64,000 nucleotides of DNA from Octopus sinensis (taxonomy: Eukaryota): assembly GCF_006345805.1 (NCBI RefSeq), contig NC_043015.1, positions 34,410,001 through 34,474,000 of the forward strand, in the 5' to 3' direction. Each line of letters starts with the position of its first letter. Within the stretch, counting starts at the first letter, position 1. The notes under the pieces are model-generated. The model had not been told where the DNA came from. It made no database searches and was given only the letters and a program-made list of their open reading frames with translations. Made by a program: the position numbers and the translations under genes. Positions 2,669-24,410 of this stretch are shown piece by piece.

Positions 2669-2731
2669 TTATATATATATATATATATATATATATATAT
2701 ATACTTTATTTTAAGCAGCAGAAAATTCAAC

Positions 2732-2779
2732 AAAATCTGTTACTCTGAGTTTCTCATTGCCGTTCATCAGACAGTTCTT
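2732..2779 (-). ncRNA. Minimal type-I hammerhead ribozyme motif (mirror twin)
   Basis: Minus strand reads AAGAACTGT-CTGATGA-ACG GCAA TGA-GAAAC-TCAGA-GTA^ACAGATTTT. Confidence 0.65.
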
Positions 2780-2800
2780 GCTAGCAAGTTCCATTCTAGC

Positions 2801-2848
2801 AAGAACTGTCTGATGAACGGCAACGAGAAACTCAGAGTAACAGATTTT
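2801..2848 (+). ncRNA. Minimal type-I hammerhead ribozyme motif
   Basis: AAGAACTGT-CTGATGA-ACG GCAA CGA-GAAAC-TCAGA-GTA^ACAGATTTT. Core is canonical; stem I is CTGT/ACAG plus extension; stem III is palindromic; the base pair at the foot of stem II is an A-A mismatch in this copy. Confidence 0.7.
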
Positions 2849-3039
2849 GTTGAATTTTCTGCTGCTTAAAATAAAGCATATTACTCTACCACTGGTATTT
2901 GAGTACTCTTTTTTCCACCTTGTTTCACATTTATGTGTTTACTCCGGTATATATATATATATATATATATATATATTGTAAAAGACAGTCTTTTACGATA
3001 AAATTGTGAAACAGGTTCTATATGACACTGTTTAAAACA

Positions 3040-3122
3040 TGCCACATACAAAAGAAGTCTTGCAACTGTCTGAATTTCAAAGAAGCCATATTGAGGGTGA
3101 ATCTGAAGGTGGACTTAGCGTA
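3040..3122 (+). mobile_element. Possible Tc1-like transposase N-terminal fragment
   Basis: MPHTKEVLQLSEFQRSHIEGESEGGLS resembles the start of the Tc1 paired-like HTH (MP..KELSEF.RG.I.G..E.GLS). Confidence 0.45.
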
Positions 3123-3210
3123 CACTCACACAAAACCTTGGGATCCCGCTTTGTAAAGGAGTCCACATCATCATGCCCAGGTTGATCAAGGTCCACTGAC
3201 AGGACCCTTT

Positions 3211-3430
3211 ACTTTGCTAAAAGAAGTGCTGGCACAAGGCCCAAAATATTTGGGGAGGGAACCAGTCTATCTAATCGACCCCAATATGCAACTGGTACTT
3301 AATTTATCGACCACGAATGGATGAAAGGCAAAGTCGACGTCGACGTAATTTGAACTCTGAACATAAAGACAGGCAAAATGCCACTAAGCGTTTTGCCTGG
3401 CGTGCTAACGACTCTGCCAGCTCGCCGCCT
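3211..3430 (-). mobile_element. tRNA-derived SINE, family A
   Basis: Minus strand starts AGGCGGCGAGCTGGCAGAGTCGTTAGC, has a GAGTTCAAATT B box and a GGGCCTTGTGCC tail. Homologous copies at 21465, 26888 and 63813. Confidence 0.85.
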
Positions 3431-3542
3431 TAGAACAAGAACAACATTAAACGAATGAAGAATATATATATACAGCACATGTGTTTATTTGGAAAAGGGG
3501 GGAAAATGACCGTCTTGAAATATACACTCTATAATTGCCCAT

Positions 3543-20290: not shown

Positions 20291-21464
20291 CCCTCCCCCT
20301 CTCCCTCACATCCATTCTCATCCCAACCCTTATTTTCTTTCATCTCTTTTCACTTCTCATCCCATTACCTTTCATCACTAGTTTGATGTTTCTTCTTCAT
20401 TCTCTCTTACAATTTGAAAATATCCACAGTTCAGCTTCTCTGTGTGTGTCCAACTCTACATATGTAAACAATTGCATGTGTGAGTTGTATGCAACTAAAT
20501 GCGTACATGATTGTATGCATGTATGCTGCTGTATACATGTGTGTATTTATCCTGTACGTGAAGTAGCATATGTGATTTTATATATGTATGTATATGTGTG
20601 TGTGTGTGTGTGTGCGTACATGCGTGTCCATGCATGTGTGAAATTGTTAGTCAAAATCAAATTGCATTTCAATAAATCATCATCAGATCCAGTTATTTAT
20701 GGGTTGGACCAATCTGAATGTAATATATCATATTCAATACTTTAATCTTTGTTTTGAAGTTTTGCAAAATTTCTTATATACAAAAGTGTGTGTATGTATA
20801 ATACACTTGTCTGTGTATATAGGTGTGTATGCATATGCAGTAGCAATTATACAATCTGTATGTATGCATGTATATATGTGTATAGACATGTATAATAACA
20901 CTTATATTATATGTGTGAATACCTGTTTAAGAGCAATTATACAACTTACATGTATGCTTGTGTATAAGAACAACTATACAACCGATATACACATATGGGA
21001 ATGTATATATGTATGTTTGTGTGCATAGAAGAGCAATAATGCAACTAAGACCGATTACACAAGCTATTCCACGAGTAAGAGGATTTTGGTAAAAATGAAA
21101 TAATGAAAGAGTGATGATGGAGAGCTTCTTACAAGACAAAAAAGACTAAGTTTAAGAACTTTTGTTTTAAACAAAAAGTGATTTCACTCAAGTTTTATAT
21201 TTAATATTGAATTGAACCTTTATACAAACCTGATGAAGTTTGTTTGTATTCAATCATTTTCTGCTGAGAGGTCTCCATTAATCTCTACATTTTTTATGCA
21301 TTATTTCATCCCAAAACTCAGTTTCAAATCTTTCACACAGCATCACAATATGCACGCTTACATATAAATAAACCTCCCAAATGGTTGTCACCATTCGATA
21401 TATTAAGCACATACTTTATTCTCAGTCTATAATATATATTGTAGCTATACACATATTAGTTTCA

Positions 21465-21672
21465 AATTTTCACACCAAGCCAGCAATTTTGGGGGAATGG
21501 GTAAGTTGATTACATCGACCCCAGTACTCAGCTGGTACTTGTTTTATCGACCCTGAAAGGATGAAAGGCAAAATTCACCTTTGGCAGAATTTGAACTCAG
21601 AACCTAGAGACATATAAAATGTCATGAAGCATTTTGCTTGATGTGTTAATGGTTCTGTCAGCTCATCACCTT
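21465..21672 (-). mobile_element. SINE family A, older copy
   Basis: ATCGACCCCAGTACTCAGCTGGTACTT...GGATGAAAGGCAAA...AATTTGAACTCAGAAC, homologous to 3211-3430. Confidence 0.8.
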
Positions 21673-22061
21673 CTTACATTTTAATACTTCAACTAAGTTA
21701 ATGTGTTCACTAAATCCAAAGATTGACCACCAGTATAGATATGGTTTTGATTCCCAGACTGAGTGGTGCATTGCATTCTGGAGTAAAACACTTCATTCCC
21801 CAGTGACTTCAACATATCACATGTAGCACTCCATACACATGGACAGGCAAGGCTGATTCCACATGTGAGTAAGCTCATGAACAGCACAAACATTTGAACT
21901 TTCTGCAAAATATTGCTGAGTCATCTTTCTCTGATTCAAGAGACTAACAAGAAAAACATAAAGGTACATAGATCCAGACTCTTGTAATTAGTGAACATTT
22001 CTTGTCATTTGACCAATACTTTGCCACATCCTCTCTTTTTAGCTATAAATATATCCCACTT

Positions 22062-22330
22062 GCTTCCTGTACCAGTACAATTACTTCCCACGCACTTCCT
22101 GTACTGGCATGATTAAATCCCACACACTTCCTGTTTAGGTATCGTTAAATACTACACACTTCCTGTTTATGTATAATTAAATCCCCCACACTTCCTGTTT
22201 GGGTCCAATTGTATAAATGTAGCATACTTCCTGTTTACATATGATTAATAAGAATGCACTTCCTGCACAGATGCAATTAAGTCCCACGTACTTCCTGTTT
22301 AGGTATAATTAAATCCTACATAACTCCTGC
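22062..22330. repeat. Minisatellite, 32-bp period, ~9 units, conserved (A/G)CTTCCTG core
   Basis: Cores start at 22062, 22094, 22126, 22158, 22190, 22226, 22258, 22290, with a degenerate one at ~22323. Confidence 0.9.
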
Positions 22331-22841
22331 TGAGATGTAGAGAGATCGTTTCTGATGCCAACATTTATTTTGTAGCAGAACCACATGCATTCGTATTCTT
22401 TTGTGCATGTGTGTGTGTGTGAGTTGTGGATGGCTGAAACACCAGTTAAGATCCCTTTTAGCCTATAATCAAAGGCATTTCAATCATGGCCTTATTGTCT
22501 TTCATCAGATAGAGAATATCTAAGACTACCTTACACAGCATGTATTTTCATATTTAGACAATAGTGTGTGATTTCAACGATATTTGATTGCTATTTCTCG
22601 TAGACTGAGTGATCATGGGATCATATAGAGGTTCCCTTATTGGTTGTTGTTCTTTAGTGTCTGATCATCTCTGGTGGTGGTTTTGGTGGTAGTCTGATCT
22701 GTTCTAATACATACACTATATTCTCTCACTATATTTGTCTTATGAATATGTGTGTACACACATACATATAAGGACATGCACATATGTGCACACACATATA
22801 TAGTTTAACCCTTAGCATTCAAATTTCTCTATCAAATGTAA

Positions 22842-23156
22842 CTGGCACTCCATTGGTTATGGTAACGAGGGTACCAGTTGATCCAATCAGTGGAACAGCC
22901 TGCTTGTGAAATTAACGTGCAAGTGGCTGAGAACTCCACAGACACATGTACCCTTGATGTGGTTCTTAGAAAGATTCAATGGGACACAGAGTGCAACAAG
23001 GCTGGCCCTCTGAATTGCAAGTACAACTCATTTTTATCAGCTGAGTGGACTGGAGTAACATGAAAAAAAGTGTCTTGCTTAAGGACACAGCCAGGCATGG
23101 AACTCATGACTTTACAATCGTGAGCCAAATACCCGAACCACTAAACCACTAAACCT
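22842..23156 (-). mobile_element. CORE-like SINE with 14-bp TSD, inserted into a piggyBac-like MITE relic
   Basis: TSD TCTATCAAATGTAA at 22828-22841 and 23157-23170; the host element begins TTAA|CCCTTAGCATTC at ~22805. Confidence 0.85.
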
Positions 23157-24217
23157 TCTATCAAATGTAATGCTTATTTATTCACATTGATAAAAACTAG
23201 TCATGCATTACCTTGCAGCTTTGAAATTTCAATGATGTGGTTATTTATTGTAGGGTAGCATCATGGATGGAACTTATGCATCCATTGGTTAACTTTACTC
23301 TGATACCATTAAAAGAAGTCTCAATATTTTGGAGCCAGAAGATCCCGGCATTAAAAATCACCCCATTACCATCACCATCACTTTAACATCTACTTTTCCA
23401 TTCTTATGTGGGTCTGACGAAAATAGACAGGAGATTTCTTGTTACTAACCTCTACTTGCTTCAAGGTAGGCAATGATGTCCCAGACATGTTTTATGTGGG
23501 GAACTTGAAACAAACAACACCATATGAGTCTTTTATTTACAAACTAGTAACTGATAAAAAGGATAAACATCAGTGATATCATAGCCAGCTATAAGACCAC
23601 TCATGTAGCCACCAGCCACATGAACAACCATATGATAAACTCTAAAGCAAAATCACATGACTACAGGCTGATAATACTTGTCAAAAGGAAAATATATTCA
23701 CAGCACTACTAACAATATTAAATGTGACCAACAACTTTGAAAACTCTGACCATCGTTGACCCACTTGAGATTTTTCACAAAGTTCATTTTCTTGTAATTA
23801 TGCAAATTTTATCAGATAAAAGTTTTTGAAACTCATACAATTTCTACAACTGTACTTGTAAAACTCAATGTGTCCAGCAATGAAAGCAGTGTGAAAAGAT
23901 CATTTCCCTCATAAGAGCTAATAAGATTAAAACACGTCCATAACTGTAACCTTGCTGGCAAACAAAGTTCACATTTTCCTCTAAAATAACAAAATACAAT
24001 TTTTTTAAAACTTGGCTTTAAATGTGTTGGAATTTTCTCCTCTTTTCTTTAAAACTCATTAATAGCTATTGCTTGGTTTTTAGTTTGCTTTTTTACAACT
24101 AAGAAACTGTTAATTCATTAAAAATATTTCATGTGTGTCTACTTTCTATTGCAATCAAATGTCTATTAAATATATTTATATTGTATATATATATATATAT
24201 ATATATATATATATATA

Positions 24218-24410
24218 CTTTATTTAAAGCAGCAGAAAATTCAACAAAACCTGTTACCCTGAGTTTCACATTGCCGTTCATCGGACAGTTACTCAGAGTA
24301 ACAGGTTTTGTTGAATTTTCTGCTGCTTTAAATAAAGCATATTACTCTACCACTGGTATTTGAGTACTCTTTTTTCCACCTTGTTTCACATTTATGTGTT
24401 TACTCCGGTA
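24218..24410. mobile_element. Second copy of the 2704 fold-back family; right arm lacks the HHR core
   Basis: Same left breakpoint (TATA|CTTTATTT) and tail (...TTTACTCCGGTA|TATA) as 2704-2949. Confidence 0.9.
24246..24290 (-). ncRNA. Minimal type-I hammerhead-like motif with CCGATGA core
   Basis: Minus strand: AACTGT-CCGATGA-ACG GCAA TGT-GAAAC-TCAGG-GTA^ACAGGTTTT. Confidence 0.6.

Follow-up and report, generated by a model that had tools for sequence, protein, structure and literature searches.

Fold-back elements at (TA)n microsatellites of Octopus sinensis, probable remnants of Penelope-like insertions with hammerhead-like motifs

In a 64,000-nucleotide stretch of the Octopus sinensis genome (contig NC_043015.1, positions 34,410,001 to 34,474,000; hereafter the window), short fold-back elements with hammerhead-like motifs lie beside (TA)n microsatellites. 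We consider these elements to be remnants of two-strand, target-primed insertion by Penelope-like elements (PLEs), with decayed hammerheads of the PLE pseudo-long terminal repeat (pseudo-LTR), and put the probability of this reading at roughly 60%. At least two PLE lineages were probably involved, one giving rise to families A and C and the other to family B. The architecture of the insertions is stronger evidence for a Penelope-like origin than the motif is. An earlier sequence-only reading of the window had described seven hammerhead or hammerhead-like motifs in what it took to be non-autonomous, Penelope-derived elements; its observations were confirmed in part and its interpretation is supported in part. 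Elements of this kind are already known, and only their occurrence in a cephalopod is new.

Copies of two families end at (TA)n tracts

The window is AT-rich (GC about 34%) and holds 28 perfect (TA)n tracts of at least 8 units. Inverted repeats and tandem tracts (Tandem Repeats Finder, TRF) were mapped on it, and family homology searches were done with nhmmer. As a second locus we used L001, 20 kb of O. sinensis DNA from CM016864.1, which was fetched via a protein matching a fragment of a long interspersed nuclear element (LINE) reverse transcriptase (RT) at positions 3-431 of the window. The best named matches of this fragment are from Octopus sinensis and the cuttlefish Acanthosepion. L001 and the window have many interspersed repeats in common, at 80-91% identity. 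Inverted repeats were found at 2.7, 8.9 and 10.5 kb, where palindromic elements had been placed by the sequence-only reading. Family A is present at five loci in 84 kb, three in the window (2.7, 24.2 and 11.7 kb, rightly assigned to one family before) and two in L001. Its parts are as follows.

2657..2703: (TA)n tract to the left of family A copy 1 (TRF), with its edge 1 nt away from the end of the arm (2704)
2704..2784, minus strand: family A copy 1, inverted tail-less arm, its 3' end abutting (TA)n (inverted repeat, 98% complementary; nhmmer E=5.6e-23)
2737..2774, minus strand: hammerhead-like motif with core CUGAUGA (2770-2764), GAAA and GUA; predicted cut 2741/2740 (strict descriptor)
2785..2795, plus strand: axis spacer of family A copy 1, 11 nt (read from the sequence)
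2796..2876, plus strand: family A copy 1, sense arm (inverted-repeat call, alignment; nhmmer E=9.9e-45 including the tail)
2806..2843, plus strand: hammerhead-like motif; predicted cut 2839/2840 (strict descriptor)
2877..2947, plus strand: one-sided family A tail, followed by (TA)n at 2948-2976 (alignment)
11668..11821, minus strand: family A copy 3, a sense arm by itself with the tail, sharing about 76% identity with copy 1 (nhmmer E=2.5e-30)
24218..24290, minus strand: family A copy 2, inverted tail-less arm with core CCGAUGA (24284-24278); predicted cut 24255/24254 (alignment, one-mismatch descriptor, nhmmer)
24291..24408, plus strand: family A copy 2, sense arm cut to 47 nt plus the 71-nt tail (24338-24408), followed by (TA)n (alignment, nhmmer)
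L001:15360-15590, O. sinensis: family A inverted pair plus tail (nhmmer)
L001:16961-17056, O. sinensis: family A solo arm, tail-less (nhmmer)

Copy 1 as a whole (2704-2947) consists of two 81-nt arms, the 11-nt spacer and the 71-nt tail; the inverted-repeat call at this place gave arms of 86 nt at 2699-2784 and 2796-2881 (98% complementary). Since the TTCCATT at 2789-2795 is also found upstream of the solo arm at L001:16961, these letters probably continue the sense arm in the 5' direction; upstream extension of that solo arm gave no more homology and no open reading frame (ORF). Copy 3 is flanked by (TA)n on the 3' side (11615-11666) and by (TG)n on the 5' side. Three copies belong to family B, at 8876-9250, 3429-3720 and L001:14578-14866.

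8876..8970, minus strand: family B copy 1, tail-less inverted arm of 95 nt, bordering on (AT)n at 8610-8879 (inverted repeat, 98%)
8971..9196, plus strand: family B copy 1, sense unit of 226 nt, whose final 95 nt mirror the inverted arm (inverted repeat, alignment)
9033..9072, plus strand: hammerhead-like motif of the minimal Penelope type; predicted cut 9069/9070 (one-mismatch descriptor)
9197..9250, plus strand: one-sided family B tail, followed by (TA)n at 9251-9509 (alignment; kept in L001 and at 3674-3720)
3429..3720, plus strand: third family B copy, 5'-truncated, without the hammerhead region (nhmmer E=1.7e-6 and 5.4e-5)
L001:14578-14866, O. sinensis: diverged family B copy with an inverted arm of about 30 nt and the same tail (alignment)

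The arms at 8.9 kb (8876-8970 and 9102-9196) are 95 nt long and 98% complementary, with 131 nt in between. The third copy is made up of a 3' part (3429-3524) and the tail (3674-3720), interrupted by an insert at 3525-3673 that resembles a short interspersed nuclear element (SINE). By eye, this insert contains tRNA-like A and B box sequences; since ARAGORN found no tRNA in the window, calling it a tRNA-like SINE is a visual reading only.

All copies of families A and B share one outer terminus within their family, and this terminus abuts (TA)n. In the window, a distance of 1-3 nt separates each of the seven outer ends from a perfect (TA)n tract with 8 or more units (P=0.006 for a random position), which bears out the earlier statement that the elements stand beside (TA)n. 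Paired arms are arranged head-to-head with their 3' ends outward, in family A at 2.7 kb, 24.2 kb and L001:15360-15590 and in family B at 8.9 kb and L001:14578-14866, and the conserved tail is found on one arm of each pair only, never on the other. The tail measures 71 nt in family A (four loci) and 54 nt in family B (three loci) and is kept across diverged copies. Of the solo arms, the one at 11.7 kb has the tail and the one at L001:16961-17056 lacks it. The inner ends vary: the inverted arm of family B is 95 nt long in the window versus about 30 nt in L001, the copy at 3.4 kb has about 96 nt and no inverted arm, and the inner ends of family A arms run from at least -25 to +20, counted from the core. 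In both lineages the tail is preceded by the hammerhead-like motif, which has the sense orientation. The predicted cut is about 37-45 nt from the tail-less terminus in families A and C and 127 nt from it in family B; in L062, a control PLE locus described below, this distance is 69 nt.

The ends also bear on a different explanation, that the elements are fold-back DNA transposons of the miniature inverted-repeat transposable element (MITE) type or other TA-targeting palindromes, on which a relaxed hammerhead likeness arose by chance and was doubled on the second arm. Long inverted repeats and TA-rich sites are typical of MITEs derived from Tc1/mariner, of which octopus has many (PMC13282606), arms of unequal length could result from loss of sequence around a palindrome's centre, and a further palindrome of the window, family D, is similar and has no hammerhead-like motif. 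However, once the tail is counted, the termini of family A (CTTTATTT... and ...TACTCCGG) and of family B (TTGTTATA... and ...TTTAAACG) are not inverted repeats. Solo arms retain the same outer end beside (TA)n, the hammerhead-like motifs are concentrated in the elements and uniformly oriented relative to the tail, and an identical layout is present in real PLE contigs. This origin therefore seems unlikely. Transposase-type terminal inverted repeats, which the sequence-only reading had named among the findings that would speak against it, are absent when the tail is included, and membership among MITEs or other DNA transposons with such repeats was rejected on the same ends. A Helitron was likewise rejected, since its 5'-TC and 3'-CTRR ends with a subterminal hairpin, and its insertion between A and T, do not fit the ends of families A and B.

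The same layout occurs at Penelope-like loci

PLE insertions are characterized by a high degree of 5' truncation, by an inverted 5'-truncated copy at the 5' end and by a tail at one end only, and the Neptune and Naiad clades prefer (TA)n (PMC8557442). The PLE protein of the anole cuts both strands and extends them; its reverse transcription begins at two internal sites that define the tail, about 90 nt past the hammerhead cut, and the hammerhead itself is dispensable for insertion in vitro (PMC11167929). In O. vulgaris, 30 recently active Penelope families have been found (PMC13282606).

As a positive control, we used 80 (357 kb) of 474 real PLE RT loci that a PLE RT probe retrieves from metagenome contigs at 60-68% identity. 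The strict hammerhead descriptor defined below gave 18 matches in these loci, or 3.2 per 64 kb versus 0.1 by chance. The control hammerheads have a bulged base, a helix II of 4-7 bp and a palindromic CG or CAUG helix III. In L015, two direct hammerheads flank the RT as a pseudo-LTR tandem. L062 contains a palindrome with a perfect axis (933-1256), whose 162-nt arms are 94% complementary and carry hammerheads that point outward; a 33-nt tail is present on one side only (900-932), and the target duplication is 9 bp long (CATTAATGA). L064 and L076 have a layout like that of L062. Since control loci are built in the same way, the layout described by the sequence-only reading is the ordinary look of a short Penelope insertion. 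Its proposal of a Penelope-like origin thus gains support from the shared outer 3' end, the one-sided tail, the variable 5' ends, the (TA)n target and the same layout in PLE contigs. As a separate observation, short palindromic elements with outward canonical minimal hammerheads lie at L062:891-1265 and also in L076, L064 and L084, and the arm sequence matches no RT-proximal region in the 80 loci; short hammerhead-bearing fold-back families may also exist in the source genome of L062, probably that of an insect.

We propose that a GIY-YIG endonuclease/reverse transcriptase would cut both strands at a (TA)n microsatellite and that each 3'-OH would prime reverse transcription close to the 3' terminus of the element's RNA. 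With their 3' ends outward, both cDNAs would then meet head-to-head and leave a fold-back in the DNA. Use of one or the other of two internal start sites would place the tail on one side only, and incomplete copying would give rise to the variable inner (5') ends and to the solo arms. The pair at L001:15.4k has its axis in a self-complementary CTAG, which, we speculate, would let the cDNA ends anneal. The hammerhead-like motif would be the small type-I hammerhead of a PLE pseudo-LTR, a short way upstream of the start sites and now mostly decayed. The sequence-only reading had the RNA copied into hairpin DNA; the documented PLE route is instead priming on both cleaved strands.

Target-primed insertion could also be the work of a LINE: the elements may be 3' fragments or SINE-like partners of a microsatellite-specific LINE (e.g. 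of the Dong/R4 type), or of a LINE with a simple-repeat tail, with twin priming producing the inverted copies. Dong is reported to insert into simple repeats. Dong-R4 elements are the most active LINEs in O. vulgaris (PMC13282606), and 5' truncation with constant 3' ends is generic to target-primed reverse transcription. Another LINE 3' region in the window (16654-17614), with a PHD-type zinc finger (16654-16863) and an RT C-terminal ORF extending to 17116, stops at (ATG)n and then (AT)12 at 17575-17614, so that other retroelements of the octopus genome also abut (TA)n. Against this origin, twin priming inverts a segment upstream of the direct one and does not yield two arms from the same 3' terminus, and families A and B have no similarity to the LINE fragments of the window. 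The one-sided tail has moreover been described as unique to PLEs (PMC11167929). We regard a LINE source as quite improbable.

State of the hammerhead-like motif

The descriptor began with a helix I of 3 bp or more, followed by CUGANGA, at most one bulged base, a helix II of 2 bp or more, GAAA, at most 12 nt, UH and, on the 3' side, the closing strand of helix I. When no mismatch in the core was allowed, there were two matches in the window (2810+ and 2770-), on the two arms of the one insertion at 2.7 kb; by dinucleotide shuffling of the window 0.10 were expected, and 9% of the shuffles had at least one match. One mismatch raised the number to 8, versus 2.8 ± 1.5 expected, adding 24284- (CCGAUGA), 9036+ (CUGAUGC) and four in ordinary sequence. 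Half of these (4 of 8) fall inside A and B elements, which occupy less than 2% of the window and would by proportion hold about 0.05. At two core mismatches, the level needed for 10500- (CCAAUGA) and 11782- (CAGACAA), the window has 146 matches. A three-helix descriptor with U4 or C4 gave three matches, all in family A, versus 0.011 expected, this descriptor having been written after the data were seen. The 9% of shuffled windows with a strict match, the 146 matches at two mismatches and chance matches in ordinary sequence such as 22508- and 46411- favor the chance likeness that a MITE-type origin would entail.

Seven hammerheads was thus too generous a count. The canonical core is found only at 2801+ and 2732-, the two arms of one insertion, whose motifs do point outward as had been described. 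At 24246- and 9030+ the motif is present with one core mismatch (U4C and A9C, respectively) and the canonical core is not, and 10500- and 11782- match only at the level that yields 146 matches. The predicted cuts at 2839/2840, 9069/9070 and 10505/10504 agree with our descriptor scan. In place of at least four families, about three carry hammerhead-like motifs (A, B and C).

The motif at 2806-2843 in family A is composed of helix I (CUGU/ACAG), the core CUGAUGA (2810-2816), a 2-bp helix II with a GCAA loop, GAAA (2827-2830) and GUA. Its helix III, ACUCAGAGU, is palindromic save at the centre; pairing between two molecules could give an 8-bp helix of -9.4 kcal/mol. The full canonical type-I core (C3-U4-G5-A6-N7-G8-A9...G12-A13-A14, with an A15.1-U16.1 pair and H17) occurs only on the two arms of the 2.7 kb insertion. 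Core position 4 is U in this copy only. It is A at 11.7 kb, where the core is worn to CAGACAA (11815-11809), and C in the 24.2 kb copy, both arms of L001:15.4k, the solo arm at L001:17k and both family C arms; families A and C have the U4C variant CCGAUGA as their consensus. U4C is a natural viroid variant that is viable in vivo with lower activity in vitro, and a 2-bp stem II is common (PMC3088659). The variant of families A and C is therefore not disqualified, yet it is not canonical. In the three-helix model, 80% of the cells pair across seven family A arms. For an isolated arm, the hammerhead fold has -3.6 kcal/mol versus -8.3 for the minimum free energy (MFE) fold, where UCAGA of helix III is paired to CUGA of the core, and a transcript over both 2.7 kb arms is a hairpin of -146 kcal/mol.

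The family B motif at 9033-9072 consists of CCA, CUGAUGC (A9 changed to C), a bulged G, a 6-bp helix II (GUCACA-GGAG-UGUGAC), GAAA, GAAC and UC, and its MFE fold adopts helices I and II. The L001 copy has the core CUGAAAA (G8A) and keeps helix II and GAAAG. Between the two motif-bearing copies, helix II is kept at 12 of 12 positions and GAAAG is kept; the loop and three core positions differ, and one A-U pair of helix I is changed to G-C. Each copy has a single inactivating core change (A9C in the window, G8A in L001). Judged from the sequences, such differences are what neutral decay from a CUGANGA ancestor would give.

An Rfam scan of the window returned nothing at any gathering score, and Hammerhead_1, Hammerhead_3, HH9, HH10 and Hammerhead_II gave no match at that score, nor at E<=10 on stretches of 101-111 nt. 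Since the Rfam models also miss genuine PLE hammerheads, this negative has little power and is not counted against the motif.

Family C, site 9546- and family D

The remaining palindromes and motif candidates of the window are listed here.

10460..10658: family C palindrome, single copy, with arms of about 93 nt, about 85% complementary, and TA-rich flanks
10500..10560, minus strand: family C hammerhead-like motif; predicted cut 10505/10504 (descriptor at two core mismatches only)
9552..9602, minus strand: site 9546- of the sequence-only reading, with GAAAC and GUA and no CUGANGA core; rejected as part of the feature
12310-12572: family D palindrome with 122-nt arms, 88% complementary, and a 19-nt spacer, directly after (TA)13

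The family C motif is made up of AAUAG, CCAAUGA, a 6-bp helix II with an inner hairpin, GAAA, CUCUGAG and UC. The other arm has CCGATGA at 10571-10577 and has lost GAAACTC, and the fold of the motif compared with shuffles gave no signal (z -0.1). Families A and C have in common only 13-15 nt, TGAAACTCTGAGT (z=7.1), plus CCGAUGA; these two sequences, with the similar distance from cut to terminus (about 37-45 nt), suggest a conserved motif in one lineage. Site 9546- did not hold up as a hammerhead: no descriptor matches it, it occurs once only, and its fold has no advantage over those of shuffled sequences (z -0.5); the surrounding sequence (9510-9720) is single-copy and unrelated to families A, B and C. 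Family D has no hammerhead-like motif and no conserved tail. Of its second copy (18314-18460), only an 11-nt inverted end (GGAGAGTCACC) is left before the sense arm.

Several palindromes have sub-threshold matches to microRNA (miRNA) precursors (2748-2832, 10518-10609, 12373-12509 and 24223-24333); if transcribed, they would form long, perfect hairpins and be possible sources of small RNAs. The elements could on this account be genes for hairpin RNAs (precursors of miRNAs or endogenous small interfering RNAs, endo-siRNAs) or for RNAs like box C/D small nucleolar RNAs (snoRNAs), and not transposon remnants. The mir-980 match at 2748-2832 reaches 40.8 bits against a cutoff of 47, and UGAUGA/CUGA gives rise to weak C/D snoRNA matches. 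However, every such match is under the gathering threshold, and the same snoRNA noise is seen on genuine PLE hammerheads. The elements are multi-copy, diverged and truncated, which is the behavior of repeats, and small RNAs would be a consequence of the hairpin and not its origin. We find this explanation highly improbable.

Other repeats and searches

A very abundant interspersed repeat, its copies 80-90% identical, is present in the window at 3959-4317, 42115-42487 and 61971-62404 and in L001 at 4682-5093, 12401-12771, 13261-13618 and 17771-17994. Part of this repeat forms an array of about 88-bp tandem units in O. sinensis (L001 18996-20382). A 32-bp tandem repeat at 22038-22320 has 8.7 copies with 65% matches. 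Two adjacent intact ORFs at 56154-57333 encode 152 and 212 aa, and the second contains a zf-CCHC zinc knuckle. Together they resemble the gag-like ORF1 of a retroelement, and no RT is adjacent.

Searches with the element sequences gave little. An exact 23-mer of the family A tail was not found in metagenome or viral contigs, a pseudo-ORF across family A had no protein matches, and a composite query of transposable elements (TEs) returned unrelated RTs only. A full-text literature search with the element sequences yielded unrelated primers only, and the supplementary files of PMC8557442 and PMC13282606 contain no TE consensus sequences. Three further loci (L002-L004, from the metagenome assembly ENA ERZ21867824) are long eukaryotic contigs with many LINE, Ty1/copia-type and other TE ORFs, and are unrelated to octopus except for a distant LINE RT.

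Discussion

Several results weigh against a Penelope-like origin. No PLE RT or GIY-YIG sequence was found in the window or in L001-L004 (tblastn with the PLE RT probe; motif regular expression), and the octopus DNA compared comes to only the window plus L001. Target-site duplications at the A and B insertions are hidden by the microsatellites, and what looks like unequal 5' truncation could come from deletions in mid-palindrome. The octopus tails, at 54-71 nt, exceed the 30-40 nt published for PLEs. Covariation among the seven family A arms was not significant, the two double changes being matched by 30 of 500 shuffles in what is an underpowered comparison. A covariance model built from eight insect PLE hammerheads, which is too narrow to be decisive, gave the best octopus copy (the 2.7 kb arms) 10.9 bits and an E of about 1.6, and it misses family B. 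The lack of an Rfam match, of a significant covariance-model match and of significant covariation would all be expected under the MITE-type explanation. Finally, over the whole window CpG is depleted (observed/expected 0.34) and TpG (1.30) and CpA (1.28) are in excess, which implies heavy methylation-driven decay and matters for the reading of CpG-containing motifs in old repeats. CCGA is therefore likely to be ancestral and the CUGA at 2.7 kb an expected decay product, so that the canonical core may be a by-product. We nevertheless favor insertion by PLEs on the strength of the architecture.

The sequence-only reading had gone further. It proposed ORF-less, non-autonomous elements derived from Penelope, whose RNA is self-processed and copied; in its fullest form, this claim would have the hammerheads, the U4C variants included, active, probably as dimers, before the copying. 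The complete canonical motif on both arms of the 2.7 kb copy agrees with this, as do CCGAUGA and GAAACUCWGAGU in families A and C, which are otherwise unrelated. The helix III ACUCWGAGU, by its capacity for an 8-bp intermolecular helix, matches the dimer design of metazoan PLE hammerheads with a palindromic helix III (PMC4209133), and the viability of the U4C viroid variant and the frequency of 2-bp stems II, already cited, point the same way. The insect control also has short palindromic hammerhead elements without a match to RT-bearing copies, and vertebrate retrozymes have been proposed to be non-autonomous PLE derivatives (bioRxiv 10.64898/2026.07.22.740005). Yet no copy was found to end at a predicted cleavage site, and the 24.2 kb sense arm starts at 24291, 10 nt upstream of the predicted cut. 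The inner ends are variable, giving no discrete unit, and fit truncated copies of a longer parent at least as well as an ORF-less element. The hammerhead fold is not the MFE fold, and the transcript of both arms is a stable hairpin. Core positions vary among copies while helix II stems are kept, and the octopus elements lack the tandem direct repeats of retrozymes. Self-processing is further weakened by the anole PLE, which inserts in vitro without the hammerhead (PMC11167929). With an intact core in one insertion, a U4C consensus in families A and C, no significant covariation and a covariance-model E of about 1.6, the term minimal hammerhead ribozymes goes too far, and active elements of this kind appear distinctly unlikely.

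A still broader scenario would have a cephalopod-specific Penelope lineage with a U4C hammerhead (CCGAUGA...GAAAC and a near-palindromic helix III) that is conserved between families A and C, is active as a dimer and drives short parasites of Penelope enzymes resembling SINEs. Their insertion into (TA)n, always head-to-head, would then create long hairpin loci, possibly sources of siRNAs, and would help to seed or fragment the abundant (TA)n tracts of octopus genomes. We strongly doubt that all of this holds. If remnants of PLE insertion are what the elements are, abundant short fold-back repeats of octopus genomes, for which standard annotation would give MITE, SINE or unknown, would be footprints of Penelope two-strand retrotransposition into (TA)n, and the classification of cephalopod repeats would have to be corrected. 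They would also provide natural examples of a tail with an inverted copy, a signature studied biochemically so far in a single anole element, and supply hammerhead variants with a U4C core for testing. What is known of hammerheads or of Penelope elements themselves is unchanged by the finding.

Among known systems, the minimal type-I hammerheads of PLEs (Cervera & de la Pena 2014, PMC4209133) are similar to the octopus motifs in the type-I topology and the CUGANGA...GAAA core, the bulged base before helix II (families A and B), the long helix II (family B), the tiny or palindromic helix III and the short helix I. The family B motif has the PLE hallmarks of a bulge before a long helix II and no real helix III, and dual minimal hammerheads 100-700 bp apart on opposite strands have been read as truncated PLEs (PMC4209133). 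Unlike the published hammerheads, the octopus motifs have an intact core in one insertion only, U4C in families A and C, and a helix II that is 2 bp long in family A and extended and branched in family C. Naiads are said to lack canonical hammerheads and to persist in cephalopods as remnants only (PMC8557442).

Non-LTR retrozymes, newt satellite 2 and Schistosoma Sm-alpha, which have been proposed to derive from PLE pseudo-LTRs, are likewise short and ORF-less, with type-I hammerheads and a palindromic helix III (PMC7229834; bioRxiv 10.64898/2026.07.22.740005). Whereas they form direct tandem repeats with circular RNAs or SINE-like units transcribed by polymerase III, the elements in octopus occur dispersed in microsatellites, as inverted pairs or as solo arms, and the window has no direct tandem copies of the retrozyme kind. 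With MITEs and fold-back DNA transposons the elements share shortness, the lack of ORFs, a palindromic structure, TA-rich sites and long hairpins; they differ from them in the asymmetric conserved tail, in solo arms with the same outer end and in having no visible target duplication. Unlike PLEs, the octopus elements have no ORF in the 84 kb examined, and no direct pseudo-LTR tandem of family A, B or C is found in the window or L001. With the insertion architecture of PLEs (PMC8557442; PMC11167929) they share arms that stand head-to-head and turn their 3' ends outward, a tail on a single side, 5' ends that vary, solo truncated copies and location at (TA)n.

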